A DNA stretch of 64,000 nucleotides. Source: Hyalangium minutum. GTDB taxonomy: Bacteria; Myxococcota; Myxococcia; Myxococcales; Myxococcaceae. The translations under genes and the position numbers were made by a program. Where the stretch lies: positions 186,001 to 250,000 of the forward strand of contig NZ_JMCB01000014.1 in NCBI RefSeq assembly GCF_000737315.1, read 5' to 3'. This document shows positions 32,047 through 54,912 of this stretch, in pieces (position 1 is the stretch's first letter; every line of letters starts with the position of its first letter). The notes below the pieces were generated by a model. The model was not told the DNA's origin. It searched no databases and saw nothing but the letters and a program-made list of their open reading frames with translations.

Positions 32047-34362
32047 TCAAAGCACCTTCAGATACTCCAGAAGATCCCTGCGCTCCTGCTCCGGCAGCTG
32101 GGTGCCATAGAGGTGTCCACTGTTGGCGTTACCCACCACGCTCGTGTCGTAGCGGAAGCCCACAGCCTCAGCCTCTGGCCCCTGAGTGACGTACCCGACG
32201 CGCTCCGGGTCGAAGACGTTGTACCCGCGGTAGAAGAGCGTGGGCCGCTGCTCGGGGGGCAACAACAAATCCCAGAGCGTGGGCACCGAGCCGTTGTGCA
32301 GGTACGGGCCACGGGCCCAGATGCCGTCGATGGGCATGTTGCTGTAGCCCTGCGTCTTCCGGTACGAGTCGAACTTGAAGGGCGGCATGTCGATCTTGTG
32401 GAAGTTGTCCACGAGGCTCTGGGTGAACGACTGGAGCCTGTGCGGGTCCGTGCCCACCTCCGCCACGGGAGTCACTCCGCCCACATCCTGGCCCTGGAAC
32501 GAGTGGCACCTCGCGCAGTTCTGTTCGTACAGCCCCTGGCCACGCTGGGCCGCATCCTTGTTGATGGGGAACGGGTAGGAGGGAGGCGCCAGGTTCAACA
32601 GGTACTGCGTCACCCGGTTGAAGCTGGGCAGCAGCACCGACTCAGGCGTGGCGCCAATGGCCATGGCCGCCGCGAAGTTGCGCTCGTGGATGTTGCCGTT
32701 GTTTCCATCCCAGTGCAGCCAGAGCTTCTCTCTCGGCTTCTGGTTCCACACCTGCGGGAGATCCGTGGTGCCAAGGCTGCCGTCATCCCCCATGAAGAAG
32801 ACGTCGATCTTGGTGGGGTTGAAGGTGTCGGTGCGGCCGCGCCCCTGCTTGGGACGGTTCTTCTGCCACGCGTACTCGCCCCGCTGGCGAAGCAGACCCG
32901 ACTGCGTCATCGGAATGATGGCGAAGCGGTAGTACAGGGACTCGATGGTCCCCATCGGGTTCTGCTTCTCAATCGCCGCCAGCACGTTGGACGCGGTGAA
33001 GCGGGGATCGGCGGCACAGTCGTAGAGGAAGCGCTGGAACCCCTCCAGGTCCAGCTCATGGGCGGGAGCGGCCGGGAGCACCCCATTCGGGCTGCTGGCC
33101 GAGGCCCGGTACGAGCCGCTGTGGCAGAGCGCGCAGTTGGGCTCCACGCTCGGGTAGCCCAGTTCCCGCCGGGCGAACCCGACAGGCAGATCCTGGTTCG
33201 GCTCCTGGATGAAGCCGAAGGAGGCCCAGCCCTGCTCCGGGAGAGGGAGCTTGTCCTTGCAGAGCACGGGCATCACCTTCCACAACCAGTAGGGAACGCG
33301 TGAGCTCATGCTCAAGCCAATGGCGCCGTACTTGTAGTGTTCCTCGTCCGTGGCGTAGCTCGCCTCGGGCTCGGCCCGCATCAGGTAGTACCAGGTGTTG
33401 TAGCCAAACAGCCCCAGCAGCACCGCCACCAGCGCCGCGGCCACCCGCTCCGGCAGCGGCCGGCCCTTCAGCACCAACACATCCCACGCTTCGGCGAGCA
33501 AGGCCTTGAGGTTGGCGCCGCTGATCCGCAGCTCGGGGGGCATGCCCGTCTGGAGGAGCACCAGCTGCACCAGGGCGAACAAGCCATCCGAGATGAAGAA
33601 CGAGGTGAACACCTGGCGATCCGGCTGGCGCATGATGCTGAACCAGAAGATCGCGGCGATGACCCGGGAGCTGACCACGATCCAGGCCGCCGCCGGGCGC
33701 CGCAGGGGATCCGCCACGGCGGGCAGATACACCAGCGACACGCCCAGGAGGACGATGCCCGCCATGGTGAGCCAGATCCCCGAGAAATCCACATACTGAG
33801 CCCCGATGGCCTTCGCGATGAGGCCCTGGGAGAACAGCGCGGGCAGGATGAAGCCGAGGTTCAACACCGAGCCCAGCCACACCACCCGCTGGAACCAGGT
33901 GAGCCCTCCCCGCTCCATCTTGACCGGACGGAAGGCCCCGGCGGCTCGCCCCAGGTTGCCCAGGCTCAGCCGAAGCTCCGGCGGCAAGCCCAGCTGCAAG
34001 AGCACCAGCGGCAGCACCGCCAGCGCTCCATCCACCACCAGCAGCGGGAGGAAGTCCTTGCCGTAGGCCGGATCCAGCACCAGCCGGAGCCAGTAAGCGG
34101 AGGCCAGCACCTTCTCCAGCACTACCAGCCAGGCCACGGGCGCGAACTTCACCGGATCCCTGGCGGTGGCGAGCATGAAGAGGCTCAGGGGAATGAGCAG
34201 CATGCCCATGTTCCCCAGCCAGACGCTGGAGAACACCACCCGCCCTGTCGCCATCATCGTGCCGAAGACATCCGGCTGGAAGATGGCCGCGGCCGCGAAC
34301 CCCACCTGCCCCACCGCGCCCACCACGGCCACCCACGCATACACTCTCAGCCAGCGGTTCAC
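32047..34362 (-). CDS. polytopic membrane protein fused to a di-heme cytochrome c (RoxA/CCP-like)
   Basis: Two similar ~4-TM modules, then CALCH and CARCH heme motifs and GPYLHNGSVPTL; GTG 34362 overlaps the upstream TGA. Confidence 0.8.
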   Translation of the reverse strand: MNRWLRVYAWVAVVGAVGQVGFAAAAIFQPDVFGTMMATGRVVFSSVWLGNMGMLLIPLSLFMLATARDPVKFAPVAWLVVLEKVLASAYWLRLVLDPAYGKDFLPLLVVDGALAVLPLVLLQLGLPPELRLSLGNLGRAAGAFRPVKMERGGLTWFQRVVWLGSVLNLGFILPALFSQGLIAKAIGAQYVDFSGIWLTMAGIVLLGVSLVYLPAVADPLRRPAAAWIVVSSRVIAAIFWFSIMRQPDRQVFTSFFISDGLFALVQLVLLQTGMPPELRISGANLKALLAEAWDVLVLKGRPLPERVAAALVAVLLGLFGYNTWYYLMRAEPEASYATDEEHYKYGAIGLSMSSRVPYWLWKVMPVLCKDKLPLPEQGWASFGFIQEPNQDLPVGFARRELGYPSVEPNCALCHSGSYRASASSPNGVLPAAPAHELDLEGFQRFLYDCAADPRFTASNVLAAIEKQNPMGTIESLYYRFAIIPMTQSGLLRQRGEYAWQKNRPKQGRGRTDTFNPTKIDVFFMGDDGSLGTTDLPQVWNQKPREKLWLHWDGNNGNIHERNFAAAMAIGATPESVLLPSFNRVTQYLLNLAPPSYPFPINKDAAQRGQGLYEQNCARCHSFQGQDVGGVTPVAEVGTDPHRLQSFTQSLVDNFHKIDMPPFKFDSYRKTQGYSNMPIDGIWARGPYLHNGSVPTLWDLLLPPEQRPTLFYRGYNVFDPERVGYVTQGPEAEAVGFRYDTSVVGNANSGHLYGTQLPEQERRDLLEYLKVL

Positions 34363-37300
34363 GCTGCACTCTCCTTCCCGGCCGGGACCTGCGCCTGATC
34401 CTTCTTCTCGGCGGCCTGGGTCTGCTCCAGGTGCTCGAGGATGCGGCCGTAGACGTCCTGGGCCGCGTTCTTGCCGAAGATGCAGTCGATGTGGCCGTAG
34501 TCCGGGATGACGACGCGGGAGTAGAGCGCCGCGCCGTTCCGCTCGCTGAGCACCTGGAGCGTCTTCTCCGTGCTCTTCGGCAGGAAGCACTGGTTGCGTT
34601 CGCCATGGATGAAGCGGATGGGGATGGCCATGCGCTCCAGGTGCGGCAGGTAGACGTTTTCGCCGTGCGCGTCCACCACATGGCCCTTGTTCACCATGGT
34701 CGCCAGTCCCTCGAGCGCCGTGATGGTCGCCTCACCGAAGAGCTCGTGCAGCGAGTCGTGCGTCAGCAGGTTGAGCTGCTCGTGCTGGTAGAGCAGCGAG
34801 TAGATGAAGCTGATGCGGTGGCACACCGCGCTGTCGCAGTGCTCGCTCTTCCCCACCGGGTAGGCGGCGAGCGCCCGGTCGTAGAGCCGCGAGAAGAGGC
34901 CCTCGCCCTTCTCGGCCTCGGTGGTGAGGGACTTGACCCCCACGAAGTCCAGGAGCTGCGGCAGGTGCAGCCCGGACTTGATCGACACCATCGTGGGCGT
35001 CTCCACGTGGGTGGAGATCTGCGAGCAGACCGCGGAGCGCACCCCCTGGAGGCCCGCCAGCATGGCCATGGTGAAGGTGGTGGAGCCGTAGCAGTGCGCG
35101 ATCACCTGGATGTCCGTGGCCCCGGTCACCTCGCGCACCTTGGCCACCGCCGTCGGCCAGTCCTGGGTGGCGATCTGATCCGCCGTGTACTGGGCCTTCG
35201 AGGCGGGCAGCAGCGTGCTGGCGCGGTAGTCCAGCAGCCACACGTCGTAGCCGTGGGCGCAGAGGTACTCGAGCAGGTTGGTGTTGATGGTGTCCGTGGA
35301 GAAGATGCGGCTGGACACGCCCAGGCCGTGCGCCAGCATCACGGGGCCCTTGCCGCCGGCCTGGTAGCGCGTGAGCACCAGGTCCACCCCGTCGGGGGTC
35401 TTGAAGCCATACAGGTGGGGCGCTGGCGCACGCAGCGGTCGCCGCTTGCGCGGGGGCGCGTTCGTGTCGACGAACTGCAGCGGCGAGAGGATGCCTCCGT
35501 AGTATTCGAACAGGACGCCCGCGAAGTACTTGCCGAACTCCAGCGACAGCTTCAGGCGCTCCGCCGCGTCCTTCGCGTTGAAGACATCCATCGTGGTGAG
35601 CTGGTGCATGAAGTCTTCCGGAGCGATCTTCAGCACGCCCCGGCCCAGCACCTTGCCCGACTCATCCTTGCCCTCGTACACGGTGATGTAGAGGGTGGTG
35701 GTGTCGTGCCACATGTTCGTGATGGACCGCTCCGTGACGACCTTGAAGCCGGTGAAGAAGAAGGTGCGGCCATCATCCGCCGTCAGCAGCATCCGGTACT
35801 TCATCCGCCGGGTATCGGCCTCGTTGGGATCCTGGACGAAGAGGTTGAACACCCCCTGGTTGGCGGTGAGCGGCTTGTCGGAGAGCGCGGGCGCGCGCAC
35901 CGTGCCCACCATCCGGGCGGAGTGGTCCGGCTGCTTCATCATCGCATCGACGTCCTCGGAGACGATGGTGAGGATGAACTCGAAGGACGAGCCCTCCTTC
36001 TCGCCGCGCGCGGCCGCCGCCACGTAGTCCGTGTCCGTGGACGGGGCGAAGAAGCCCTTCATCGTCTCGGTGAAGCGGATGCCCGGCTTGCGGTTGTTGG
36101 CCAGCAGGGGCATGGGCCCCTTCTTCGAGTAGTCGATCGTCCAGCCGCGCTCCGCCGCGAGCCGCATGGCGCAGCGCTCGGAGATCGCGGAGATGGTGAG
36201 CAGCGGGTTGACGCCCAGCGATGTGGGGACGACGGAGCCATCACACACGTACAGCCCGTCGTACGTCGCCTCGCCGGCGTTGGAGGCGAAGACCTTGTTC
36301 TCGTGGTTGACCACGCCCTGCTCGGCGCTGTCCGCCATGTTGCAGCCACCCAGCGGGTGCACGGTGATGAGGCTCTTGCCGAGCAGCTTCTCCCAGACGG
36401 GATCCCGGGTGTAGATGCCCTGGAGCGCCTGGGTGGCTCCCATCAAGCGCTTGTCCACTGTCTCGAAGATGGGCCGCTTGCCCACGCCCGCCCACTCGAT
36501 GCGCAGCCGGTCCCCCTCCAGCTTCATGGCGCCGTCGCTGCCGTCGTGGCCCATCACCAGATAGGTCTGCGTGTTCCGAACCGCGCCGTGGTAGGCGCCG
36601 AGGATCTCGCTATCGACCTTGCGCAGTTCCTGCTGCACCACCAGGCCCGGGGCCGTGTTAGAGCCCTCGAGGTCGGCGGCCGCGGCGAGCATCGCGGGCA
36701 GCACCGGAGCCAGCGCGCCCGGGATGGCGCCCTCCTCCATGATGAGGTCGTCCTCCACCTTCTCCTGGTTGCGCATGTCGATGATGCTGGTGATGGTGGG
36801 CCCCACCTCCCCCGCCTCGTGCTCGGACCGGGTCCCGAAGCCAATGCCCTGGATGGCGGACTCGTTGTTGTAGGCGAAGCCCAGCACGTCTCCGTTGCCG
36901 CTGAAGCCCTTGCCCACCTGATCCGAGACGGGCAGTCCCTGCTGCTTGGAGCGCAGGAGGATCTCGGAGGAGCCCAGCGCGCCCGCCGCCAGCACGACGA
37001 TGTCCGCCGACACGGTCAGCAGCGGGGCGTCGAACTTCTCCCGGCCGGTGTCCAGCACCTGGTAGTGGACCAGCCACTTGCCGTCCGAGCTGCGCTCGAC
37101 GTAGCGCACGCTGGTCTCGCAGTAGATCTCCGCGCCGTGCCGCTTCGCATCCGGCAGGTAGTTCATCAACACGGTGTTCTTCGCGCCGACATTGCAGCCG
37201 GAGCAGCAGTCACCGCAGTTGTTGCAGGCCTTCTGGAACACGCCGGCGGCATTCTCCCCATCCTCGAAAGTCACGTTGATGGCGGTGCGGTAGAACTTCT

Positions 37301-39155
37301 GCCCCATGGCCTCGGCGGACTTCTTCATCGCCTCCAGCTTGGGGAGCTTGGGGCGGGTATCCGGGTAGGGCTGGGGCCTCAGCATCGCCTCCGCGAGCGA
37401 GTAGCCCGCATCGAGCTCCTTGCTCTTCTCACCGCGCAGGGCCTGGGGCCAGCGCGGGTTGTCGAAGACGCGGGCCTCGGCGCGGATGGAGACGTTGGCG
37501 TTGATGAGGGAGGTGCCCCCCAGCCCGCAGCCCACCAGCACGTTGATGTCCGGGTTGCAGTGGAAATCGAACATGCCGGTGCGCGAGCCCACATGAGCCG
37601 AGGGCATGTTCAGCTGCATGTTCTCGGTGGCCTCCAATACGGTGTTGGGGAACTCACCGGGCTGGCGCTCGCGGCCGCGCTCCAGCACGCAGACGCTCTG
37701 GCCAGCGCGCGACAGGCGGGAGGCGAGGATGGCGCCACCGTAGCCAGAGCCGATGACCACAGCGGTGTAGTGGGGGCGAATTTCCTCAATGGGTGAAGCG
37801 AGACGATTCATGCGCATGGGACCAGCTCCGGGAGAAGCAACAGCGGGGGCAACAGGGACATCGACACGGGGTGAAGAGGGAATCGCGCTGCCAGGAGGCG
37901 CGCGCCGCTGCGGCTCCTTGCGCATGGCAATGCTCTTCGGAGGCGTGAGCGGCTGAGGGGCCACCTGATAGACGCCCCCTTCGTCGGTGACGTGCCGGGT
38001 GCTGATGATGAAGCGGCTCGCGGCCTCGTCGATCTCCACCTCGGTGAAGGTGCAGTAGCGACGCTTGTCGTGAGCCTTCATGTCGGGCTCGGACGGACAG
38101 CTGAACCCGCAGTTGGAGTAAAGGCTCTCCGCCATGAAGAGCTGGTGCTCGTCCTCATCGACGGGCACGTGGGTGTGCCCCATCACCACCACCGGGTACT
38201 TGAGGTCCTCTCCCAACCGCTTGGCGAAGTGGGTGATGTTGTTGAGCACGTCCACCTCGGCCAGCGCGAACTCCCCGGGGAAGGAGCCATAGACATTCTT
38301 GTTCTTGCTCGCCGTCTCCTCGTAGCTCTTGAGGATGGACGGGTAGGTCTTCACCACGTCGGAGACGCTCAACCGCGTGCCATCGAGCATCTCGAACGTC
38401 AGGTCACGCGACTGGCCGGTGACATCAAGCAGCGCGCTCAGCACCACGTCTGACAGGGAGCTCCGCCCGTGCTCCAGATCCTTGAGGAGCTCCTTCAGTG
38501 CGTCTTTGGCCAGGGGCCAACCCGTGGGATCGCCGCCTCCCGGGAGCGCGGCCGCGGTGGAGCCCGGGGGCATGTGGCTCAGCTGCTGGAGGGACCACAG
38601 CGCCGCCATGCGGGTGATGAAGTGCGCGAAGGGCAGGCCGTTGCGAGGGTTCTGGATGTAATCGGGAGCATTGAGCAGCGAGAAGTGGTGACCATGGGTG
38701 CAGACCACCTGCCCCCTGCCCGCGGGCGGCTCATACAGCAGCGAGTTCACGAACCGGGGGGAGCGGCCCTTCGAATCGCGAATGAGGGTCAGGTCCTTCG
38801 CGGTCACCGCCATGTCGTGGTTGCCGCCCACATAGGTGACACGCCCCTCGAGCGCCTCCACCGCCGCACCGAGCGCGCCGGGAACCCGCTGCCCATTCAC
38901 CACTCCACCGAACACCTGGGGATTGGCCGCAGCGATGTCCGCGAAGGACGGAGGCCTGCGCGACGGCTCGTAGGTCCACTGATCCACGAGGTCGCCCACC
39001 ACCACCAGCTCCTGAATGGAGCTCGCCTGCCGCTGGATGTACTCGAAGGCTGCGAGCAGATACGGCTCGTGGATCGAACGCTGGTACCAATTCGTCGCAG
39101 CGTTGATGCCAATGTGGAGATCGCTGAAGAGAACGATTCTTGGGTTCTGGGGCAT
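34359..39155 (-). CDS. metallophosphoesterase - GMC (cholesterol-oxidase-like) flavoprotein - alpha/beta hydrolase fusion (~1598 aa)
   Basis: SDLH, GDLVD, GNHD, THGH, GHTH; then VIGSGYGG, GCGLGGTSLINANV, TVHPLGGC, GVNPLLTI; then LAHGLG, AHCYGS, YGHIDCIFG. Confidence 0.85.
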   Translation of the reverse strand: MPQNPRIVLFSDLHIGINAATNWYQRSIHEPYLLAAFEYIQRQASSIQELVVVGDLVDQWTYEPSRRPPSFADIAAANPQVFGGVVNGQRVPGALGAAVEALEGRVTYVGGNHDMAVTAKDLTLIRDSKGRSPRFVNSLLYEPPAGRGQVVCTHGHHFSLLNAPDYIQNPRNGLPFAHFITRMAALWSLQQLSHMPPGSTAAALPGGGDPTGWPLAKDALKELLKDLEHGRSSLSDVVLSALLDVTGQSRDLTFEMLDGTRLSVSDVVKTYPSILKSYEETASKNKNVYGSFPGEFALAEVDVLNNITHFAKRLGEDLKYPVVVMGHTHVPVDEDEHQLFMAESLYSNCGFSCPSEPDMKAHDKRRYCTFTEVEIDEAASRFIISTRHVTDEGGVYQVAPQPLTPPKSIAMRKEPQRRAPPGSAIPSSPRVDVPVAPAVASPGAGPMRMNRLASPIEEIRPHYTAVVIGSGYGGAILASRLSRAGQSVCVLERGRERQPGEFPNTVLEATENMQLNMPSAHVGSRTGMFDFHCNPDINVLVGCGLGGTSLINANVSIRAEARVFDNPRWPQALRGEKSKELDAGYSLAEAMLRPQPYPDTRPKLPKLEAMKKSAEAMGQKFYRTAINVTFEDGENAAGVFQKACNNCGDCCSGCNVGAKNTVLMNYLPDAKRHGAEIYCETSVRYVERSSDGKWLVHYQVLDTGREKFDAPLLTVSADIVVLAAGALGSSEILLRSKQQGLPVSDQVGKGFSGNGDVLGFAYNNESAIQGIGFGTRSEHEAGEVGPTITSIIDMRNQEKVEDDLIMEEGAIPGALAPVLPAMLAAAADLEGSNTAPGLVVQQELRKVDSEILGAYHGAVRNTQTYLVMGHDGSDGAMKLEGDRLRIEWAGVGKRPIFETVDKRLMGATQALQGIYTRDPVWEKLLGKSLITVHPLGGCNMADSAEQGVVNHENKVFASNAGEATYDGLYVCDGSVVPTSLGVNPLLTISAISERCAMRLAAERGWTIDYSKKGPMPLLANNRKPGIRFTETMKGFFAPSTDTDYVAAAARGEKEGSSFEFILTIVSEDVDAMMKQPDHSARMVGTVRAPALSDKPLTANQGVFNLFVQDPNEADTRRMKYRMLLTADDGRTFFFTGFKVVTERSITNMWHDTTTLYITVYEGKDESGKVLGRGVLKIAPEDFMHQLTTMDVFNAKDAAERLKLSLEFGKYFAGVLFEYYGGILSPLQFVDTNAPPRKRRPLRAPAPHLYGFKTPDGVDLVLTRYQAGGKGPVMLAHGLGVSSRIFSTDTINTNLLEYLCAHGYDVWLLDYRASTLLPASKAQYTADQIATQDWPTAVAKVREVTGATDIQVIAHCYGSTTFTMAMLAGLQGVRSAVCSQISTHVETPTMVSIKSGLHLPQLLDFVGVKSLTTEAEKGEGLFSRLYDRALAAYPVGKSEHCDSAVCHRISFIYSLLYQHEQLNLLTHDSLHELFGEATITALEGLATMVNKGHVVDAHGENVYLPHLERMAIPIRFIHGERNQCFLPKSTEKTLQVLSERNGAALYSRVVIPDYGHIDCIFGKNAAQDVYGRILEHLEQTQAAEKKDQAQVPAGKESAA

Positions 39156-39412
39156 AGACAGCCTCGACTGCAAACCCATGGCCAAGAACACACGACAGAG
39201 ATCCCGAGGCAGGATGTCCCCTTGCTTCTCAAAACGTTCGTTCTGACATGTCAGAGAGGGGGGAATTGACATGCCGGGAAAGAGGACTGACACGTCGGCC
39301 TCCATCCCCCCATCTCCACAGCCCCGATCTCACTGCATCCATGGATGGGCTCTGAACTTGCAGAGGGCAAGGTCACACCCCCATGGGCCCAGACACGGGC
39401 CAGGAGTACGGC

Positions 39413-42401: not shown

Positions 42402-43037
42402 GATGAACCTCGGAGCCCCGGGCGCACCACGGCGGCCAGAGGCTCTTCAGCAGAGAGGGGACGGATGAGGCGGGGTGAGCTTGCGAGCAACGAAGGCGGG
42501 GTGCGCCGTCGACGGTGGGATTAACCCGTGACCGTCGAGGCGCAGAACCCAGGGCAAGGCGTCTTGCGGACGCACCTTCCCTGAGTGCCGTGCGTCGGCA
42601 TCGATGCGCTCAGGGAAAAGGTGAATCGGGACAAGACGCCTCCAGGTACCGCCCTAAGGGTATGCGTCCTCACGTTCTTCTGCAACCTACCGATGCCGGT
42701 GCCCCAGGGGGCACGCCCTGTCGTGTCCCTCAAGCCGAGTCCCGTGGGCGAGCGCTCGCCAACACGCCTCGTCAGTGTTGCAAACATGTCAGCGCACAGA
42801 CACTGCCTTGAGACTGGGGGATCATGGGGGGAGATGCGGAGCGGATTTAGGTTTCGCCATGTTGCCGAGTAGCTCGAAAAGAGAGTTTGTGCCTGGCTGA
42901 ATAACGCTTCGGCCAACGCTTGTGATTCAAGGGCTGGCTTGTTGCCACGAGCCGCCCCAGGGCTCCTCATTGCCTGAGTCCTTGCAGGGCACTGTCGGCG
43001 CAGTACCGCAGTACGTGTTGCAGTATTGCCAATCAAT

Positions 43038-43043
43038 AGGAGG
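43038..43043 (+). promoter_or_regulatory. strong Shine-Dalgarno site of the precursor peptide gene
   Basis: AGGAGG followed by 9 nt then ATG 43053. Confidence 0.8.
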
Positions 43044-43052
43044 AAACACCCA

Positions 43053-43178
43053 ATGGATAACACCCATGAGCCGCAGACGGAGCAGGACACCCAGCCAACC
43101 GATGAGGAATTGACCGACGAGCAACTGCTGCAGATGGCCGAGGGCTCCTGCACCTGGGGCGCCAACTGCGGCAAGTAG
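43053..43178 (+). CDS. RiPP precursor peptide, 41 aa: MDNTHEPQTEQDTQPTDEELTDEQLLQMAEG-SCTWGANCGK
   Basis: Translated by hand (absent from the ORF track); strong RBS; acidic leader ending ELTDEQL..MAEG like the ELSDEELxxVxGG leaders; Ser/Thr/Cys/Trp core; first gene of a LanM operon. Confidence 0.88.
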   Translation: MDNTHEPQTEQDTQPTDEELTDEQLLQMAEGSCTWGANCGK

Positions 43179-43202: not shown

Positions 43203-44270
43203 ATGAAGTCCCTCACCGACGACATGGAACTCAATCTCAACACATCGTTGAAATGGGTGGAGCCGCTGCTCCCTCCATTGCTCATGTCGCCGGTGAGCTT
43301 CTCTCGCATCCAGAGAGCCGCGCGACTGCTGCCTCGGTCCGCAGCAGATTTTCTCGGCTTCGAGTGCCGTCTGGTGGAGAGCGACTCGCAGACGGACTGT
43401 GCCCTCAATCTGACAGCGGATGGAGCTCGCTACCTGGCCGGGCGCCATGAGGTGGCGCTGCCAGAGGAGTTGCGGACGGAGAGCTGGCAGCGCGTTCAGC
43501 GCTTCTATCAAGAGTGGGGAGATACCCGGGAGCCCGCCTATGTGGACGCGGGGGCAACCTGGCTGGAGTTCGACACGGCTTCCGACGAGCTCAGGCCCAA
43601 TCTCCTCTTCGGATATTGGCCCGGCAAGAAGGAGATCCGGCGCTCCCTGCCCTGGCTGGTGCAGTCCATCATTCCCATGCTGCTGGGCATGCCGATTTCA
43701 CAGGCGCTTCAGAGCAACCTGCTTCGCTGCTTCGAACTGTGTCCGCCCGGGACGGACGACTTCCAGGTCGGGCTGATGATCGCCCGCCACATCCAGGCCG
43801 TGCGGCTGTGTGTGTTTGATATTCACCCAGACGAGGCGCCTGCCTACCTCGAGAGGGTGGGATGGAAGGGCCCGATGGATGAGGTCCGCCGGACCTTGGA
43901 GGTGCTCGCGCCGCACGCCGACTTCATGGGGCTGCATCTGGACGTGGGAGAACAGCTCTATCCCCAGATCGGGATCGAGCCGGGCTTCGTCGCGGGCCCT
44001 TGGGCTCGCCAGCCTCACCTGGAGCCTCGCTGGCATCACCAGTTCGAGCAATTGGTGAACATGGGCCTGTGTACGCCCTCCAAGCGCGACGCCTTGCTGG
44101 GCTGGGTCGGCCATCAGCGATACCCGGCGGACTCGAAGGATGGAGGGCTGGTGCTGCTGCGGGGGCTGAGCCACCTGAAGATCGTTCTGCGAACGGGCGC
44201 CCCTGCCCTGGCGAAGGCCTACTTCGGTATTGCCGACCGGCCCCTGAAGGCTGGGAATGGAGTGGCTTGA
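43203..44270 (+). CDS. putative (ABBA/DMATS-like) peptide prenyltransferase
   Basis: GFECRL, WLEFD and C-terminal GLSHLKIV...AKAYFG pattern; context with a terpene cyclase and polyprenyl synthase; fold not verified. Confidence 0.5.
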   Translation: MKSLTDDMELNLNTSLKWVEPLLPPLLMSPVSFSRIQRAARLLPRSAADFLGFECRLVESDSQTDCALNLTADGARYLAGRHEVALPEELRTESWQRVQRFYQEWGDTREPAYVDAGATWLEFDTASDELRPNLLFGYWPGKKEIRRSLPWLVQSIIPMLLGMPISQALQSNLLRCFELCPPGTDDFQVGLMIARHIQAVRLCVFDIHPDEAPAYLERVGWKGPMDEVRRTLEVLAPHADFMGLHLDVGEQLYPQIGIEPGFVAGPWARQPHLEPRWHHQFEQLVNMGLCTPSKRDALLGWVGHQRYPADSKDGGLVLLRGLSHLKIVLRTGAPALAKAYFGIADRPLKAGNGVA

Positions 44271-44273
44271 GCC

Positions 44274-45329
44274 ATGGATGCAGCCATTGCCGCGGCGCTG
44301 GACTTCCTGTTGAAGGCGCAGGACGCACGAGGAGCGTGGAAGGACTTCATGCTCCCGGCCACCCAGAGCGACGTCTGGGTCAGCGGCTTCGTAGGGGAGG
44401 TGCTGGCCGGCCTGGCCGAGCCCGAGGCGCGGCGGGCCGCAGAGGCCGCCTGGCGGTACCTCGAGGACGTGGGAGTGCCGGGGGGAGGTTGGAGCTACAA
44501 CACCCGGGTCCCAGGAGATGCCGACAGCACGCTCTGGGGACTGAGGCTGGCGGGGGCGCTGGGGTTCGGAGACGCTGCTCGAGCGAAGGCTGCGAGGGAC
44601 TTCCTGGAGCGCCACCTGCGCGAGGACGGCGGCATGGCGACCTATGCGTCGGCCGAGTCCGTGCGGGATTACATCGGGTTGCCGCCGGAGGTCTCCTTCC
44701 AAGGGTGGACGGGTTCCCATGTGTGCGTGAGCGCCGCAGGCGCCAACCTCCCCGCCTACCGCGAGCGGCTGTGTGCGTACCTGCTGCGGACTCAGGATGA
44801 GCACGGGGCCTGGCCCGCCTATTGGTGGTTCGACGAGGAGTACGCCACCGCCGAGGCCGTGGCGGCCTTGGCGGCAGCCCATGAGGCCTTAGTGCCTGCG
44901 TCCGAGAGACTCTCCCGGATCGAGCGGGCCGCGCAGTGGGCGCTGGGGCGTGTGGCTCGCCACCTGGAGTCCGTAGACACGCGGCCTCCGTCGTTCGCGC
45001 TGGCGCTGGCGCTGCGGGTGCTGACTCGCGCCAAGCCCTCACCGCAGCGGCAGGAGGCCCTCGCCCGGGGCGTGTCCCAGCTCTGCGCCTGGCAGAAGCC
45101 TCAGGGCGACTGGTCTCCTTCTGCCCGGTTGCGAGTGCCACGTCCGGACGTGGTGACGCCGGAGTCGAAGGCTCCTTGGACGCTCTGGAAGGGGCTGCCT
45201 CCCGGAGTCGCCTCGGCCGAAGACATCTTGCGCCACACCTTCACCAACTACTCCCTGGATCATTACGCCGTGTACACGACAGGGACCGTGCTTCGCGCCC
45301 TGAACGAGGTGCGCGTGCTCCAGGGATGA
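44274..45329 (+). CDS. monodomain class II terpene cyclase (prenyltransferase/squalene oxidase repeat)
   Basis: QW-type repeats QDARGAW, QDEHGAW, QKPQGDW; DADST acid motif; 351 aa, i.e. a single (alpha/alpha)6 domain. Confidence 0.75.
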   Translation: MDAAIAAALDFLLKAQDARGAWKDFMLPATQSDVWVSGFVGEVLAGLAEPEARRAAEAAWRYLEDVGVPGGGWSYNTRVPGDADSTLWGLRLAGALGFGDAARAKAARDFLERHLREDGGMATYASAESVRDYIGLPPEVSFQGWTGSHVCVSAAGANLPAYRERLCAYLLRTQDEHGAWPAYWWFDEEYATAEAVAALAAAHEALVPASERLSRIERAAQWALGRVARHLESVDTRPPSFALALALRVLTRAKPSPQRQEALARGVSQLCAWQKPQGDWSPSARLRVPRPDVVTPESKAPWTLWKGLPPGVASAEDILRHTFTNYSLDHYAVYTTGTVLRALNEVRVLQG

Positions 45330-45353: not shown

Positions 45354-46163
45354 ATGACGGGACTGCCGAAACTCCATGCAACCCAGCCGCTGGCCGAAGC
45401 CCATGCGGAAGCGCTGCGCGCTGCGGGCCACGTGCTGCTTCGAGGCGTCTTCTCTCCCGAGGAGATCGCCGCCTACCGCCCCGCGCTGCGGGACTACATC
45501 CTGGAGAAGCGGGAGCGGCTCTCCGCGGGGGAGCGCAACCTGGGTGCGAGCCCGGAGAACACGATCTTCAGCCTCGGGGATGCCCCCCAAGCCGTGGCCG
45601 ACTTCGTGACGGCGCCACGTCTGGGCGAGCTCACCGCCCGGTTGCTCGGCGTCGAGGCCGTGCGGATCCTCCACTTCTGCGGCTTCTTCAAGCCCGGGGG
45701 AGGCCCGCCCACGCCATGGCACCAGGACCTGAGCTTCATCCCGTTGGACAGTGATCGGACGATCTCCGCCTGGATCCCGCTGATGGACGTCACGCCGGAG
45801 ATGGGAAGCCTGGTCTTCGCCGAGGGTTCTCATCAGCAAGGCTATCAAGAGCCCTCCGCCGCGCACCGCTTCTGCCTGGCGCGCAACGGGGCGATGAAGG
45901 CCGGAGACGTATCGCTCCACATGGGGTGGACCCTGCATGCCGCCGGGAGGAATGAGAGCGCGAGGATGCGAGAGGCGATCGCCGTGTGTTTCTACGCGGA
46001 CGGCGCACGGGTGACTTGCGGGGAAGGATTGCCGTTCCGCCGCAGCTTGATGACGTCCTACTTCGCCGGGCTCCGCCCGGGAGACGTGGCCGCAGGTCCC
46101 ATGAACCCCGTGGTCTTCCGGCGAAGCGGCCCGCCGGCTGGCTTGGAAGGAGCGCATCCGTGA
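45354..46163 (+). CDS. PhyH-family Fe(II)/2OG dioxygenase
   Basis: KPGGG..TPWHQD, AWIPL, GSH, distal H (TLHAAG.N.S...R). Confidence 0.9.
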   Translation: MTGLPKLHATQPLAEAHAEALRAAGHVLLRGVFSPEEIAAYRPALRDYILEKRERLSAGERNLGASPENTIFSLGDAPQAVADFVTAPRLGELTARLLGVEAVRILHFCGFFKPGGGPPTPWHQDLSFIPLDSDRTISAWIPLMDVTPEMGSLVFAEGSHQQGYQEPSAAHRFCLARNGAMKAGDVSLHMGWTLHAAGRNESARMREAIAVCFYADGARVTCGEGLPFRRSLMTSYFAGLRPGDVAAGPMNPVVFRRSGPPAGLEGAHP

Positions 46164-47062
46164 CTGCACATGGTCCCCTTCCCTCCCTCGAGGAGAAGTA
46201 TGAGCTGCCGGAGGAACAGCTCGAGACGTTCCGCCGTGACGGACACGTCAAGCTGCGCGGCGTCCTGTCTCCCGCGGAGCTCGAGACATACCGCCCACAC
46301 CTGAAGCGCGTGGTGGAGTCGCACAGCGCGGAGACGCACGCCATGGAGCGCAAAGTGGCGGGCCACGGGAAGAACTGGATGTTCGTCAACAACCTGTGGA
46401 CGCAGGATGACATCACTCGCCACTTCATCCAGAGCCGGCGCCTGGCACGGCTCGCGGCGGAGCTGCTGGGGGTGGAGGGCGTCCGGCTGTTCCGGGATCA
46501 GTCGTACTTCAAGGGTCCCGGTGGCTCCAATACGCCCTGGCACCAGGACTCCCGCTTCATGCCGCTCGATACGGACAAGATCATCACCTTCTGGGTGCCG
46601 CTCACCGCCATCACCCCAGCCATGGCGCCCATGGGCTACGTGACAGGCTCTCATCAGGCCGGGTACCTGGGCACCTCGAACGGGGACGATGCATCGATGG
46701 ACCGCTTCGAGGAGGAGCTCAGCGGCAAGGGCTTCCAGATCGCCAACTACGGCTCCTTCGACGCCGGCGATATCGCGGCGCACTGGGCCAGCACGCTGCA
46801 CTCCTCGCGCACCAACACCGCGCCCATCCTTCGGGAGATCATCGTCATCGTCTATTTCGCCGATGGGGCGCGCGTCGCGCCGGAGAAGCCCCTAGAGAAG
46901 CTGGCTCCACCGTCGGAGTTCTACGCCAACATCATCCAACGAGAGAACCGGACCACCTCCTTGCCCGGGCTGAAGCCGGGAGCGCTGGCTGCCGGGCCGA
47001 TGACTCCTCTCGTCTACAGCCGCTCGTGGGATGAGCACGACGCAAGGAGCCCCATCCCATGA
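46160..47062 (+). CDS. PhyH-family Fe(II)/2OG dioxygenase (second copy)
   Basis: TPWHQD, FWVPL, GSH, TLHSS..N....R; GTG 46160 overlaps the upstream TGA. Confidence 0.9.
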   Translation: MTAHGPLPSLEEKYELPEEQLETFRRDGHVKLRGVLSPAELETYRPHLKRVVESHSAETHAMERKVAGHGKNWMFVNNLWTQDDITRHFIQSRRLARLAAELLGVEGVRLFRDQSYFKGPGGSNTPWHQDSRFMPLDTDKIITFWVPLTAITPAMAPMGYVTGSHQAGYLGTSNGDDASMDRFEEELSGKGFQIANYGSFDAGDIAAHWASTLHSSRTNTAPILREIIVIVYFADGARVAPEKPLEKLAPPSEFYANIIQRENRTTSLPGLKPGALAAGPMTPLVYSRSWDEHDARSPIP

Positions 47063-52300: not shown

Positions 52301-52483
52301 CTGGCGCTGCGCCAGGCCTCCTCGGTGGTGAGGGGCGCCCGGGCCAGCGGCTACCGGTTCTCCGGGGTCGCGCGGGGCGGCTTCTTCGATCCGTCCTTCT
52401 TCCAGGGGCTCTCGGGCATCGGCTACCAACTGCTGCGGCTCGCATTCCCGGGGCGGCTTCCCTCGGTGCTCGTGTGGGAGTGA
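49394..52483 (+). CDS. lanM: class II lanthipeptide synthetase LanM
   Basis: SDRH.GG, YKPR, D.(F)YEN, LIDTETL dehydratase motifs; DLYGG..GIALF, GLAHGAAG, WCHGAPG, LCCG cyclase motifs. Confidence 0.9.
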   Translation: MSQERLAEEEAVRRIAARASTLWDRLEGAFVPEEGPESAQLASERLAKWRAKAAGGDERLFQKRLEWLGTSPQKVRPLLGDVRLDGPIPAWTRTFQRAMALRRPAGPGGQAAPFPFGELMLPFVEAGKELLAPECRAVFTAEAFDHLLEDLVHELSYVAAPTLLAEFTSFRSRQGGGAEPTSRRLYEAFTAHQLGEGLWQLFSDASVLARLLSTVTEQWARHVSEIARAVKADQRELQRVFTSGAPLGRITSIQPSLSDRHQGGRTVARVTCGGGLQLFYKPRGLGVEDAWYGLLEELNARGGDFRRLRVLDRGDRSWVEPALHAPCANTLEARQFYVRAGMLLSLFYVLEASDCFYENIIAAGAFPVLIDTETLMHHVPHRSQDGAFHSVIHAGFLPSWDVGPRGECFDISGLGATAGQVTGYLRRQWRHVNTDAMALEHVPIQVETDEHLPKLNGVSLRAADYTGELIEGFSMMYRLLRKHREELARPESPLARLGTQDIRFIFHASRFYGLLLKRLCSPQHMKTGVERSIETDILSRFYVESPEKSHYVPLLAAELEALERLDIPCFKARADSHALTLPTGQVLPEAFEQSGSERVWRKLSALDEADLELQMRFIHGSLSMANPPQGAKTGARPRHAAASQETGPLTREELAAEASSIGATLQERALFAPVRMDLYGGLGGIALFYAALEHVSGQGRRMALAALSSLRRFVATEDARRAAQEGYPLGAATGVGSFLYVLCRSATLLGEPSLLEDATRAAGLIAPEVIEADSAFDVMSGVAGAILGLMTLHQATGAAGALEKALHCGEHLLKHQLPCEPAGASWRTRKGRPLTGLAHGAAGIALALLRLHAAVGDARLRQAAEQALAFEDAVFVPSEGNWPDFRQAHEGTPAFMSAWCHGAPGIGLARISGQALLDSPRVRRDIEAAVSSVRQQGLADKDGLCCGQTGRIELLLAAARVSGDRGLEELALRQASSVVRGARASGYRFSGVARGGFFDPSFFQGLSGIGYQLLRLAFPGRLPSVLVWE

Positions 52484-52494
52484 GGGGAGAGCGC

Positions 52495-53952
52495 ATGGAA
52501 CGGAACGATACGCCGGAGCAGCTCTCCTCCTTTCTGGAGCGCATGAGGGCCTCGGAGCCAGAAGGCGGTGAGGCCATCATCGATCAGGCCCGCGAGCTGC
52601 TGGAGCAGGCCTATGTCCACCTGCCCGACAACCAGGCCTCGGGAGTGGATCCCCTCGGCCTGTTGGCGGCGCTTCAACGCGAGCTGCCCCGGGATCGGGT
52701 CCAGCTGTACCGCGAGCTGCTCGCGATCTTCGCACGGCTCGGGGATCGCCACACTCACTGCAGCCTGCCCGAGCCTTTCACGAGCCAGGTCGCCTTCCTC
52801 CCCTTCTTGGTGGGGGAGTTCTTCGAGCGGGGCGAGCGGTATCTCGCGGTGCTCCACTCCGCCACCCGCGAGCTGGAGCGTGGGGATGTCCTCGTCTCGT
52901 GGAATGGCGCCGCCATGGCGGAGGTGCTGGGACGCCAGCAGGAGTGGCAGCACGGCTCCCATCTCGAGGCCCGGTACGCCAAGGCAGTGCAGACGCTGAC
53001 TTTCCGTCCCCTCGCGTTGATGCCACCGCCCGAGGAGGAAACAGTCGCCTTGGAGTGCGTGTCTGCCATGGGAGCGAGGCGGACGGTGCGGATGAACTGG
53101 CGCGTGGCAGATGCCGCGTGGCTCGCGCAGCGCTTCCACTCTTTCCTGGATGGAGTCTCCGCGGCGGAGCCTGGACAGGAGCATGGCTTCTCCGCGCGCC
53201 GGGTGGAGACCTCTCACGGAACGTTTGGCTATATCCGGGTGAACTCGTTCCAGGAGCGCCCCGAGCCCTTTCTGGGACGGTTCTCGCGAGTGCTGAAGGA
53301 CATGCCCCGCAGCGGGCTGATCCTGGACATGCGGAGTTGTGAGGACGGCATCGTGCAGCTCGGGGAGCGGCTGCTCCAGCTCTTCACCCCACGGAGGATA
53401 CAACCCGAGCCCTTCCAGTTCCGGGTCACGGAGTTGACCCTGCAGCTCGTCCGCTCGGTGCCAGCGCTTGCCGGCTGGCGAGAGGCCGTCGAGCGTGCGG
53501 CGGCCCAGGGGCGGATCTACTCGGAAGCGCTGCCACTGACGACCGAGAGTGAGGCGAACGGGAGCCGCCAGAAGTACGCCGGTGCCGTCGTGCTCCTCAC
53601 GAGCGCGTTGACCTACAGCACCGCCGAGATGTTCGCCGCGGGGTTTCAGGACCACGAGATCGGCCGGGTGGTAGGGACAGCCCCGCGCACAGGGGGTGGA
53701 GGCGCCTCGCCCTGGCCGCAGAGCACCCTGTTCAAGCTCTCTGGGAGAGCCGCCTTCCGTCCCCTGCCCCGTGGCCCTTTCTTTCGCGTCGCCGTCCGAA
53801 GGTGTCGGCGCGTGCATGCGAGGGCGGGCGCTCTCCTCGAGCGTGAGGGCGTGGCCCCCGACGTGCTCCACCCGCCGACGCGGGCGGATCTCTTCCACCA
53901 TGACAGGGACCTCCTGGAAGTGGCCGGAAGAGTGCTGACAGGGATGCAGTAG
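52495..53952 (+). CDS. S41-family peptidase
   Basis: GYIRV.SF, GLILDMR, YSTAEMFA, G..T.GGGA; PDZ-like middle region; ATG 52495 behind GGGGAG. Confidence 0.8.
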   Translation: MERNDTPEQLSSFLERMRASEPEGGEAIIDQARELLEQAYVHLPDNQASGVDPLGLLAALQRELPRDRVQLYRELLAIFARLGDRHTHCSLPEPFTSQVAFLPFLVGEFFERGERYLAVLHSATRELERGDVLVSWNGAAMAEVLGRQQEWQHGSHLEARYAKAVQTLTFRPLALMPPPEEETVALECVSAMGARRTVRMNWRVADAAWLAQRFHSFLDGVSAAEPGQEHGFSARRVETSHGTFGYIRVNSFQERPEPFLGRFSRVLKDMPRSGLILDMRSCEDGIVQLGERLLQLFTPRRIQPEPFQFRVTELTLQLVRSVPALAGWREAVERAAAQGRIYSEALPLTTESEANGSRQKYAGAVVLLTSALTYSTAEMFAAGFQDHEIGRVVGTAPRTGGGGASPWPQSTLFKLSGRAAFRPLPRGPFFRVAVRRCRRVHARAGALLEREGVAPDVLHPPTRADLFHHDRDLLEVAGRVLTGMQ

Positions 53953-53973: not shown

Positions 53974-54912
53974 ATGACGATGTCCTCAGCCGACCTGACA
54001 ACCAGCCCCCATGAGGGCTCGGCCCACATCGAATTCCTCCGGCGCTTGCATGAGCGGCAACAGCTCGTGACACGAGCGCTGGACGAGCACTTCCCTGCCG
54101 GAGCCGGACCCTTGATGGATGCGATCCGCGGGGCCTTGCTGGCCGATGGCAAGCGGCTGAGGCCCATTCTCTGCCTGGAGGCCTGCCAGTGGTCTGGTGG
54201 GAGCCCCCAGGCCGCGCTGCCCGCAGCCTGCGCCATCGAGATGATCCACAAGATGACGCTGGTGCACGATGACCTGCCGGCCATGGATGATGCGCAGACG
54301 CGCAACGGCCGGCCGGCGCTGCACAGGGTGCATGGCGAGGCGCTGGCCATCCTCGCCGGAGATGCACTGCTGGTGCATGCGTTCGGGCTGCTGGCGTCCA
54401 CTCGCGAGGTGCCCGCCGAACGGGTGACGGGCGCCATCACGCGCCTGTGCCAGGCGCTGGGCACCGCCGGGCTGGCCGGGGGGCAAGCCCTGGACGTGCT
54501 CTCTCAAGCCGGAGATGTGACGCCCGAGAAGCTCGATCATGTTCACACCTGGAAGACCGCGAGCCTCTTTGAGGCGGCCATCGTCATCGGCGCGGAGATG
54601 GGAGGGGCAAACGCCTCCCAGGTCGAGGCGCTCGCCCGCTATGGGATGCTGCTGGGCAGGGCGTTCCAGATCTCCGATGACCTTCAGGATGCCCAGGACA
54701 CCCAGGCGGTGACGCCGCACGAGGTGACGAACTACGTCCAGCTCCACGGGGTGGAGGGGGCCCGGCGCAAGCTGCGCGAGCTGCTGAGCCAGGCGGTCTC
54801 CGCGATCCGCTCGGTCCAGGGCGGAGACAGCCAGCTGCTGGCGGGAATCACGGAGCTGGTCTGGGAGCACTCCTGGAGCACGGGTGAGGGACACCATGGC
54901 CATCACGCCTGA
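53974..54912 (+). CDS. crtE: trans-isoprenyl diphosphate synthase, GGPP-synthase-like
   Basis: GKRLRP, HKMTLVHDDLPAMDD...RNGRP (FARM), AGGQALD, KTASLF, FQISDDLQD (SARM). Confidence 0.88.
   Translation: MTMSSADLTTSPHEGSAHIEFLRRLHERQQLVTRALDEHFPAGAGPLMDAIRGALLADGKRLRPILCLEACQWSGGSPQAALPAACAIEMIHKMTLVHDDLPAMDDAQTRNGRPALHRVHGEALAILAGDALLVHAFGLLASTREVPAERVTGAITRLCQALGTAGLAGGQALDVLSQAGDVTPEKLDHVHTWKTASLFEAAIVIGAEMGGANASQVEALARYGMLLGRAFQISDDLQDAQDTQAVTPHEVTNYVQLHGVEGARRKLRELLSQAVSAIRSVQGGDSQLLAGITELVWEHSWSTGEGHHGHHA

Follow-up and report, generated by a model that had tools for sequence, protein, structure and literature searches.

A small conserved gene of Hyalangium minutum encodes the probable precursor of a lanthipeptide carrying a cyclised terpene

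What is made from the very small gene that stands at the head of a tightly packed operon in the myxobacterium Hyalangium minutum? The gene lies in a stretch of 64,000 nucleotides (NCBI RefSeq assembly GCF_000737315.1, contig NZ_JMCB01000014.1, positions 186,001 to 250,000 of the forward strand), which is referred to here as the window and whose own numbering is used throughout. It specifies a peptide of 41 residues and is followed by genes for a prenyltransferase, a terpene cyclase, several oxygenases and a class II lanthionine synthetase (LanM). The original prediction, made from the DNA letters, had read the peptide as a precursor with a minimal leader and with a Trp as likely prenyl acceptor, and this idea holds. 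We propose, with a probability of about 0.8, that the peptide is the precursor of a lanthipeptide carrying a cyclised terpene, and that the cluster is related to the NctPC/steromaze-type pathway, from which it differs by its split enzymes and short leader. That pathway is described second-hand in PMC13290415, PMC12715784 and PMC13647313. According to these accounts NctPC is an alpha-beta-beta-alpha (ABBA) prenyltransferase fused to an MstE-like cyclase, which attaches a C20 chain to Trp and subsequently cyclises the chain (PMC13290415, with reference to Hubrich et al. 2024).

The small open reading frame (ORF) is present as it had been quoted, with 41 amino acids between an ATG at 43053 and a TAG stop at 43176-43178, both read directly from the sequence. 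The AGGAGG ribosome-binding site that had been claimed for it is also there, 9 nt before the ATG, and GGAGG is likewise found upstream of the precursor copies of Stigmatella, Archangium and Cystobacter. A mechanical ORF list gives the same frame from an upstream TTG at 43026 (50 aa). This start was rejected and 43053 was retained, because the AGGAGG would lie within the extension and because the homologues begin at the Met equivalent to the ATG. A small ORF behind an AGGAGG is, taken alone, not beyond chance in the window. At 68% GC this is to be expected: in the 64 kb, AGGAGG with a start codon 4-12 nt later that opens an ORF of 25 aa or more occurs in 24 combinations, or about 20 different ORFs when both strands are counted. 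Ribosome-binding site and ORF are therefore insufficient by themselves, and the comparative data decide. The GC content at third codon positions (0.86, versus 0.84 for the LanM gene) fits a coding region, which for 42 codons is weak evidence. The description of the gene as unannotated was true only of the ORF track used at that time: the gene is called on contig JMCB01000014.1 of GCA_000737315.1, and the exact 41-aa protein is already recorded in NCBI, including NCBI nr, and in UniRef. Its homologues in Stigmatella aurantiaca, Myxococcus hansupus, Sorangium and others are annotated as 'hypothetical protein'.

Used as a query against protein collections, the 41-aa sequence retrieved 24 homologues with lengths of 40-66 aa, the sources being Stigmatella aurantiaca, Myxococcus hansupus, M. 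dinghuensis, Cystobacter fuscus, Archangium, Sorangium and numerous metagenomes. Additional precursor copies were read directly from four related loci (L012, L015, L052 and L056). When metagenome contigs were scanned for the back-translated pattern C(S/T)WGANCG, 49 stretches were obtained, three of them real (L033, L052 and L056) and the others chance matches in other frames or contexts. Each locus carries one precursor gene; a second copy was found neither in the window nor in the other loci examined. The block ELTDEQL(L/Q)Q(M/L)AEG-SC(T/S)WGANC is common to all 24 database homologues, which differ in their N-terminal 15-35 residues and in the 1-8 residues after the last Cys; counted over all sources, 27 relatives have it. 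The codons of this 22-codon block were compared in six independent genomes. Synonymous variants occur in 15 codons and a residue change in a single one (Met/Leu), and for Gly up to all four synonymous codons are used. By our own estimate, in which a random change is taken to be silent with a probability of roughly 1/4 to 1/3, a ratio of ∼19 synonymous events to one non-synonymous event has a chance probability of the order of 1e-9. The upstream non-coding DNA has a mean column identity of 50% across the loci. The existence of homologues and the near-exclusively synonymous codon variation show that the precursor gene is real and under selection at the protein level.

Conservation of single sites was determined in 28 sequences, of which 26 have a short leader. 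Trp35, Gly36, Ala37, Asn38 and Cys39 are invariant (28/28). Position 34 is Thr in 25 sequences and Ser in three, and hence dehydratable in all. Position 33 is Cys in 27 of 28, the copy of the alphaproteobacterium Alteriqipengyuania lutimaris having Ser. Position 32 is Ser, Ala or Asp, and the tail past Cys39 varies widely (GK, HG, G, GRG, GS, GSSKKISR, NKAC or GVSA). The best-supported ring would join Thr/Ser34 to Cys39 around Trp-Gly-Ala-Asn. Trp35 retains its place as the likely prenyl acceptor, being invariant and encoded next to an enzyme with an indole prenyltransferase fold (see below). The other sites proposed originally fare differently. Of the two predicted thioethers, the one at Cys39 has a conserved partner in Thr/Ser34; with one conserved dehydratable residue, two thioethers are doubtful. 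Ser32 is no longer tenable as a conserved modification site, given its replacement by Ala or Asp in relatives. Of the two suggested hydroxylation sites, Lys41 falls in the variable or absent tail and is not a conserved one; Asn38 is a good candidate, because it is invariant and because the JmjC proteins of the operon are closest to protein-residue hydroxylases. The A. lutimaris precursor (L012 9703-9849) ends ...ELSDDQLVQLAEG-ASSWGANCNKAC and carries an extra Cys four residues after Cys39.

We place the boundary between leader and core, by inference, after the A-E-G that precedes Ser32. The proposed leader, residues 1-31, contains 10 Asp/Glu and zero Lys/Arg. Its last part, ELTDEQLLQMAEG, is a putative docking site for LanM and probably also for the prenyltransferase. 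In the window peptide this part runs L20-TDEQ-L25 and then LQMAEG, and so contains the L(X)4L motif, which has been described for NHLP/Nif11 leaders and is the enzyme-binding hotspot in MppE and SrpE (PMC12715784, PMC11791876). Two relatives carry a ∼70-residue NHLP-type domain in place of the variable leader part. One is a 94-aa ORF of L015, directly upstream of the fused enzyme P0116, that ends ...LEGSELEDMIVAD-CSWGANCGVSA and scores 47.5 bits (E = 1e-12) against the NHLP leader model TIGR03793, the cut-off of which is 50.9. The other was found in L052 by the metagenome pattern scan and ends ...FDDMVVAD-CTWGANCG. Counted from the first core Cys, Leu at -13, Leu at -8 and Met at -5 are common to the short-leader peptides and the L015 copy; in the L052 copy, -8 is Phe and -5 is Met. 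The window peptide accordingly resembles an NHLP-type precursor without its structured N-terminal domain, in which the last ∼13 leader residues are retained. The term 'minimal leader' proved apt, as precursors that have an NHLP leader and likewise the core C(S/T)WGANC share their hydrophobic register with the window peptide. Its assignment to the Nif11/NHLP type stands as a resemblance that includes the L(X)4L register, and not as scored membership in any curated model. The leader ends A-E-G in the window peptide and V-A-D in the NHLP-type relatives, and neither offers a Gly-Gly site.

The 355-aa protein encoded directly after the precursor has no Pfam or NCBIfam match at E ≤ 0.01, curated ABBA models of the Trp_DMAT / PTase_Orf2 type included, and no sequence match in the PDB at E ≤ 10. 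Its structure was predicted with AlphaFold2 from an alignment of 41 family members. The model (mean pLDDT 92, pTM 0.90) has a repeated helix-helix-strand-strand arrangement. In a Foldseek search against the PDB all 38 chains at E ≤ 0.001 were ABBA-type aromatic prenyltransferases, most of them indole or Trp enzymes. These include dimethylallyl-tryptophan synthases, IptA, PriB, CdpNPT, AmbP1, AmbP3 and the cyanobactin enzyme PatF; PagF and PirF fell just above the threshold (E about 1.3-1.5e-3). The model points to an ABBA prenyltransferase at the level of the fold, not of close homology. A profile search of 1.84 billion representative sequences collected 3,793 family members at E ≤ 0.001, for which no Pfam model exists. 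Its likely role in the window gives a large family of 'hypothetical' proteins a probable function, namely that of peptide prenyltransferases. Other members of the family are fused to a 2-oxoglutarate-Fe(II) oxygenase domain or to N-terminal domains of ∼350 aa without assignment (P0141, P0153, P0154, P0169 and P0174). A second, divergent prenyltransferase paralogue (27-31% identity) is encoded in Stigmatella (L004 4264-5163) and in a Blastocatellia-type metagenome genome (L010 18471-19370). It adjoins a gene for a WelO5-like 2-oxoglutarate enzyme, in Stigmatella also one for a sulfotransferase, and has no counterpart in the window.

The next protein, of 351 aa, matches MstE (PDB 6SBB and 6SBG) over its full length (phmmer E = 6e-58), and its GDADST aligns with the acidic motif GDADTT of MstE. 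Matches to the squalene-hopene-cyclase family are weak. Prenyltransferase and cyclase are two genes in the window, the stop of the first at 44270 and the start of the second at 44274. Several family members of ∼720 aa carry a C-terminal cyclase-like domain, and fused prenyltransferase-cyclase relatives are found in P0116, P0144, P0242 and an ORF of L052. In P0116 (from L015) the first 350 residues are 42% identical to the window prenyltransferase and the last 340 are 44% identical to the cyclase. The two halves match the two window genes, which are therefore a split form of the fused prenyltransferase-cyclase. The fused enzymes of L015 and L052, both low-GC loci, have 718-721 aa and 42-46% identity to the two window proteins. 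Behind the fused enzymes come PhyH and JmjC genes, ordered as in the window; in L052 the precursor is followed by the 718-aa fused enzyme and then by three PhyH and two JmjC genes.

Eleven genes lie downstream of the precursor gene on the same strand, separated by short gaps or overlapping, and the conserved cluster extends over ∼43.05-58.5 kb (Table 1). Two features of a LanA-type gene are present: a small gene co-oriented with LanM in a tightly packed operon, and a leader followed by a core with Thr/Ser34 and Cys39 in 28/28 sequences. The peptide is clearly conserved in syntenic clusters: the independent loci that hold the operon number at least nine and belong to Myxococcota, Blastocatellia and an alphaproteobacterium. 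Headed by the small gene and in the same gene order, it occurs in Stigmatella aurantiaca DW4/3-1 (L004), Sorangium (L006, L007 and L009), Myxococcus sp. (L011), Archangium and Cystobacter (L002 and L003) and two Blastocatellia-type metagenome genomes with 53% GC (L008 and L010). A. lutimaris (L012) has a reduced form of the cluster. The genes upstream of the precursor gene differ between genomes; the precursor gene therefore marks the left edge of the conserved unit.

Table 1. Features of the precursor gene and its operon in the window (coordinates in window numbering).
Feature	Coordinates	Strand	Basis or remark
Possible sigma-54-type promoter element GGGCACTGTCGGCGCAG	42987..43003	+	GG-N10-GC spacing; ∼50 nt upstream of the start codon
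Ribosome-binding site AGGAGG	43038..43043	+	9 nt before ATG 43053
Precursor peptide gene	43053..43178	+	41 aa plus stop: MDNTHEPQTEQDTQPTDEELTDEQLLQMAEGSCTWGANCGK
Variable acidic N-terminal leader part, residues 1-18	43053..43106	+	Homologues vary here in length and sequence
Conserved leader motif ELTDEQLLQMAEG, residues 19-31, with L20-x4-L25	43107..43145	+	Near-invariant in 26 short-leader sequences
Proposed core SCTWGANCGK, residues 32-41	43146..43175	+	Conserved part C33-T/S34-W35-G36-A37-N38-C39
ABBA-fold prenyltransferase, 355 aa	43203..44270	+	Fold from AlphaFold2 model and Foldseek
Monodomain class II terpene cyclase, MstE homologue, 351 aa	44274..45329	+	phmmer versus MstE
Fe(II)/2-oxoglutarate oxygenase, PhyH family, 269 aa	45354..46163	+	Pfam PF05721, E = 1e-25
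Second PhyH oxygenase, 300 aa as publicly called	46160..47062	+	Pfam PF05721; L001 13108-14010
JmjC-type oxygenase 1, 396 aa	47059..48249	+	Pfam JmjC_2, E = 3e-25
JmjC-type oxygenase 2, 383 aa	48246..49397	+	Pfam JmjC_2, E = 1e-25
Class II lanthionine synthetase LanM, 1029 aa	49394..52483	+	TIGR03897, 764 bits versus cut-off 304, full model length; Pfam DUF4135 and LANC_like
S41-family serine peptidase with PDZ	52474..53952	+	Pfam Peptidase_S41 and PDZ_4; start 52474 (GTG) or 52495 (public call)
Short-chain trans-polyprenyl diphosphate synthase	53974..54912	+	Pfam polyprenyl_synt
B12-binding radical-SAM enzyme, 670 aa	54884..56896	+	Pfam Radical_SAM and B12-binding
Beta-lactamase-fold serine hydrolase, 525 aa	56912..58489	+	Pfam Beta-lactamase, E = 5e-58

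Four oxygenases are encoded between the cyclase and LanM. The nearest solved structures of the first PhyH protein are SnoK and a leucine hydroxylase. Those of the first JmjC protein are NO66, MINA53, YxbC ('putative asparaginyl hydroxylase') and YcfD, all protein-residue hydroxylases. The radical-SAM protein further downstream is, judged by its family, probably a C-methyltransferase, and orthologues with 68-83% identity occupy the same position in the Sorangium and Myxococcus loci. Wherever a short-leader locus continues beyond LanM, the next gene is that for the S41 peptidase, the one exception being the Alteriqipengyuania locus; the enzyme is our candidate for the leader peptidase. An alternative candidate is the beta-lactamase-fold hydrolase, which probably belongs to the cluster. 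Its relatives lie in or near the cluster at differing positions in Stigmatella (61% identity), Blastocatellia (54%) and Sorangium and Alteriqipengyuania (29-32%), and it may serve the pathway as a peptidase, an esterase or an immunity protein.

The prenyl donor is probably supplied by the polyprenyl synthase of the cluster, which is also clustered in L008, L009 and L011. Its best NCBIfam match is a CrtE-type geranylgeranyl diphosphate (GGPP) synthase (246 bits, below the cut-off). In the context of its first Asp-rich motif, IHKMTLVHDDLPAMDD, Met and Thr occupy the fifth and fourth positions before the motif. This is a pattern that we take to resemble type II GGPP synthases rather than farnesyl diphosphate (FPP) synthases. 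A C20 donor chain is likelier than a C15 chain. In Sorangium an HMG-CoA reductase gene adjoins the cluster (L009 14525-15691) and suggests a dedicated mevalonate supply.

Some of the related loci deviate from this layout. The cluster of L012 has one JmjC gene and no S41 peptidase, and contains genes for a DUF6072 protein and an ABC transporter. The low-GC locus L013 (1-21038) has the prenyltransferase, the cyclase, two PhyH, two JmjC, LanM and S41 genes. A precursor was not recognisable in the 10 kb upstream of its prenyltransferase gene; it may be located elsewhere or be very different. In the NCWS assembly of Cystobacter fuscus (L003 10001-11055 and 19519-20944) the prenyltransferase and S41 frames are in pieces, probably owing to long-read indel errors rather than to pseudogenes.

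Upstream of the precursor gene, the element GGGCACTGTCGGCGCAG is kept in the alignment with Stigmatella (L004) and Myxococcus sp. (L011). By its agreement with the consensus it is a possible sigma-54-type promoter. A second conserved motif, TTTGTGCCTGGC(T/A)GAA, lies at about 42886-42905, ∼100 nt upstream of GGGCACTGTCGGCGCAG. A sigma-70 scan of the region upstream of the precursor gene found no promoter, and the sole terminator-like site in the scan is inside the prenyltransferase gene. Further upstream, a gene on the minus strand (34359-39305) encodes a 1,648-aa protein with metallophosphatase, GMC oxidoreductase and alpha/beta hydrolase parts beside a RoxA-like cytochrome c gene. It is unrelated to the cluster.

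In the pathway that we propose, ELTDEQLLQMAEG with its L(X)4L motif would serve to dock the peptide on LanM, and probably also on the prenyltransferase, residues 1-18 acting as a spacer. LanM would dehydrate Thr34 and close a methyllanthionine ring onto Cys39 around Trp-Gly-Ala-Asn. The ABBA enzyme would then alkylate the indole of Trp35 in the cyclised peptide while the leader is still attached, probably with geranylgeranyl diphosphate from the polyprenyl synthase of the cluster. The MstE-like cyclase would protonate the terminal double bond and fold the chain into a polycyclic unit. Tailoring could involve the two PhyH and two JmjC oxygenases and the B12 radical-SAM enzyme, with Asn38 as the best candidate for hydroxylation of the peptide. 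Finally, the leader would be cut off near Gly31/Ser32 by a peptidase of the cluster, most likely the S41/PDZ enzyme.

Several observations weigh against this reading of the locus. Pfam and NCBIfam leader models gave no match at E ≤ 10 for the window peptide or for four homologues, and the Foldseek TM-scores of the prenyltransferase are modest (0.35-0.5). The polyprenyl synthase lies below the curated cut-offs for both GGPP and FPP synthases, so that C15 and C20 chains are both possible. No C39 peptidase domain was detected in the cluster proteins of the window or is listed for the genes of the related loci. Together with the missing Gly-Gly site this leaves the processing of the leader unexplained; S41 enzymes are not mentioned in a 2023 review of leader proteases of peptides that are made by the ribosome and modified after translation. 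In the core there are two Cys and one conserved Ser/Thr, so that Cys33 lacks a conserved partner, and in the Alteriqipengyuania copy Cys33 is replaced by Ser.

The position of Cys33 bears on an alternative in which the peptide is a LanM substrate but the prenyl group sits, instead of on Trp35, on Cys33 in a thioether of the kind known from CaaX proteins, or on some other residue. A Cys that is present in 27/28 sequences, preceded by Ser, Ala or Asp and directly adjacent to Thr34, may have another use than ring formation. We give this alternative a small chance, since the Alteriqipengyuania copy dispenses with Cys33 while Trp35 is invariant and since most of the enzyme's nearest relatives by structure are indole or Trp prenyltransferases. 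Moreover, both known lanthipeptide-associated ABBA enzymes act on Trp, MppC (PMC12715784) and, in the second-hand description, NctPC (PMC13290415). It is also conceivable that the product is an ordinary class II lanthipeptide, with prenyltransferase, cyclase and polyprenyl synthase, mere neighbours in the genome, producing a small-molecule meroterpenoid of their own. The substrate of MstE is indeed not a peptide (PMC12324236). Such a coincidence is hardly probable, however: the precursor gene lies directly before the prenyltransferase gene, this order is kept across three phyla in split and fused forms, Trp is invariant in the core, and the operon showed no gene that would supply an aromatic small molecule as acceptor.

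We find least credible, and very improbable, that the ORF does not encode a modified precursor at all but a small peptide with a regulatory or metal-binding role, or that it is a conserved DNA element, untranslated or regulatory. A ribosome-binding site with an ORF is, as shown above, within chance expectation, and the sole Pfam matches of the peptide are to CCCH zinc-finger models (E = 0.006-0.015), through its C-x-W-G-x-x-C. These matches are below the cut-offs; they cover 10-11 residues and reach 16 bits versus a cut-off of 24.6, and were judged spurious. A purely DNA or RNA element is excluded by the substitutions, almost all of which are synonymous in frame. Furthermore, position, size, acidic leader and a C-terminus rich in Ser, Thr, Cys and Trp near a LanM gene are the standard anatomy of a precursor.

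The reading as precursor of a terpene-bearing lanthipeptide can be extended to a bolder proposal, which is tentative and in our view rather unlikely to be right. Here ELTDEQLLQMAEG would be a complete and self-sufficient leader for LanM, the prenyltransferase and the later tailoring enzymes and would make the ∼70-residue NHLP domain dispensable. The S41/PDZ enzyme would represent a previously undescribed kind of leader peptidase, which cuts at a site other than Gly-Gly and possibly measures from the short C-terminus via its PDZ domain. The product, with an extra B12 radical-SAM step, would be distinct, and its core, frozen across three phyla, would point to one conserved molecular target.

The system represents a compact version of the pathway, with a substrate of 41 residues and a recognition element of ∼13 residues. 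Prenyltransferase and cyclase are separate proteins, so that each can be expressed and studied alone, and the cluster has its own prenyl-donor synthase. This makes it attractive for dissecting how a multi-enzyme pathway recognises a leader, and for the engineering of cyclic peptides that bear a terpene tag. Myxobacteria, acidobacteria, an alphaproteobacterium and low-GC NHLP-type loci all have the core C(S/T)WGANC in frozen form, which suggests a specific conserved target or function. To our knowledge, the first description of peptides with cyclised long-chain terpenes dates from 2024, and we know of few examples. Full-text literature searches returned no paper on this cluster; Hubrich et al. 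2024, which lies outside those searches, might list such clusters.

Four known systems invite comparison. The class II precursors of the Nif11 and NHLP families (prochlorosin and proteusin types; TIGR03798 and TIGR03793) resemble the window peptide in the acidic leader end, the L(X)4L motif and the small residues before the core. The end of a prochlorosin leader, ...LSDDELEGVAGG, presumably lines up residue for residue with LTDEQLLQMAEG. Unlike these precursors, the window peptide has no structured N-terminal domain and no match to a hidden Markov model, has Glu and not Gly at -2, and is accompanied by no C39 peptidase-transporter. The merosterolic acid synthase MstE (6SBB) is, like the window cyclase, a monodomain class II cyclase of ∼350 aa with an aligned D-x-D motif; it differs in cyclising a geranylgeranyl chain on benzoate and not on a peptide.

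The mpp cluster of Moorena producens (MppE, MppM and MppC) combines a 7-residue Trp-containing core with a LanM, a prenyltransferase, a terpene synthase and a separate peptidase (PMC11791876). There, the lanthipeptide is macrocyclised before it is prenylated, and MppC, which prenylates Trp, depends on the leader and on the L(X)4L motif within it (PMC12715784). The window system is alike in being class II and in its short Trp core (ACWRWSG in mpp), and would be alike in a leader-dependent ABBA enzyme that prefers the cyclised peptide (PMC11791876, PMC12715784). A further likeness is that the mpp cluster encodes an oxygenase besides the terpene synthase and the separate peptidase. MppE differs by its 77-residue Nif11 leader that ends in Gly-Gly. 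The mpp pathway moreover uses a C10 donor at indole C5, has another core, and its ring runs in the direction Cys79 to Ser83.

The closest likeness is to the NctPC pathway, as far as the second-hand accounts describe it: an ABBA-fold enzyme and an MstE-like cyclase that act on a Trp of a ribosomal peptide, a lanthionine synthetase, ring closure ahead of prenylation and a long-chain (C20) donor. The comparison rests on these published descriptions, which the fused enzymes of L015 and L052 and the core C(S/T)WGANC fit. By these accounts NctPC is a fusion and its host is a cyanobacterium, whereas in the window prenyltransferase and cyclase are separate genes, and the hosts of the short-leader clusters are Myxococcota and Acidobacteriota. 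Unlike the nct-type loci L015 and L052, the window has a leader of ∼31 residues without an NHLP domain. Through the homology of its enzymes to those of these loci and the identity of the core, the loci being ones that fit the description of the NctPC/steromaze pathway, the window system is very probably orthologous to that pathway.

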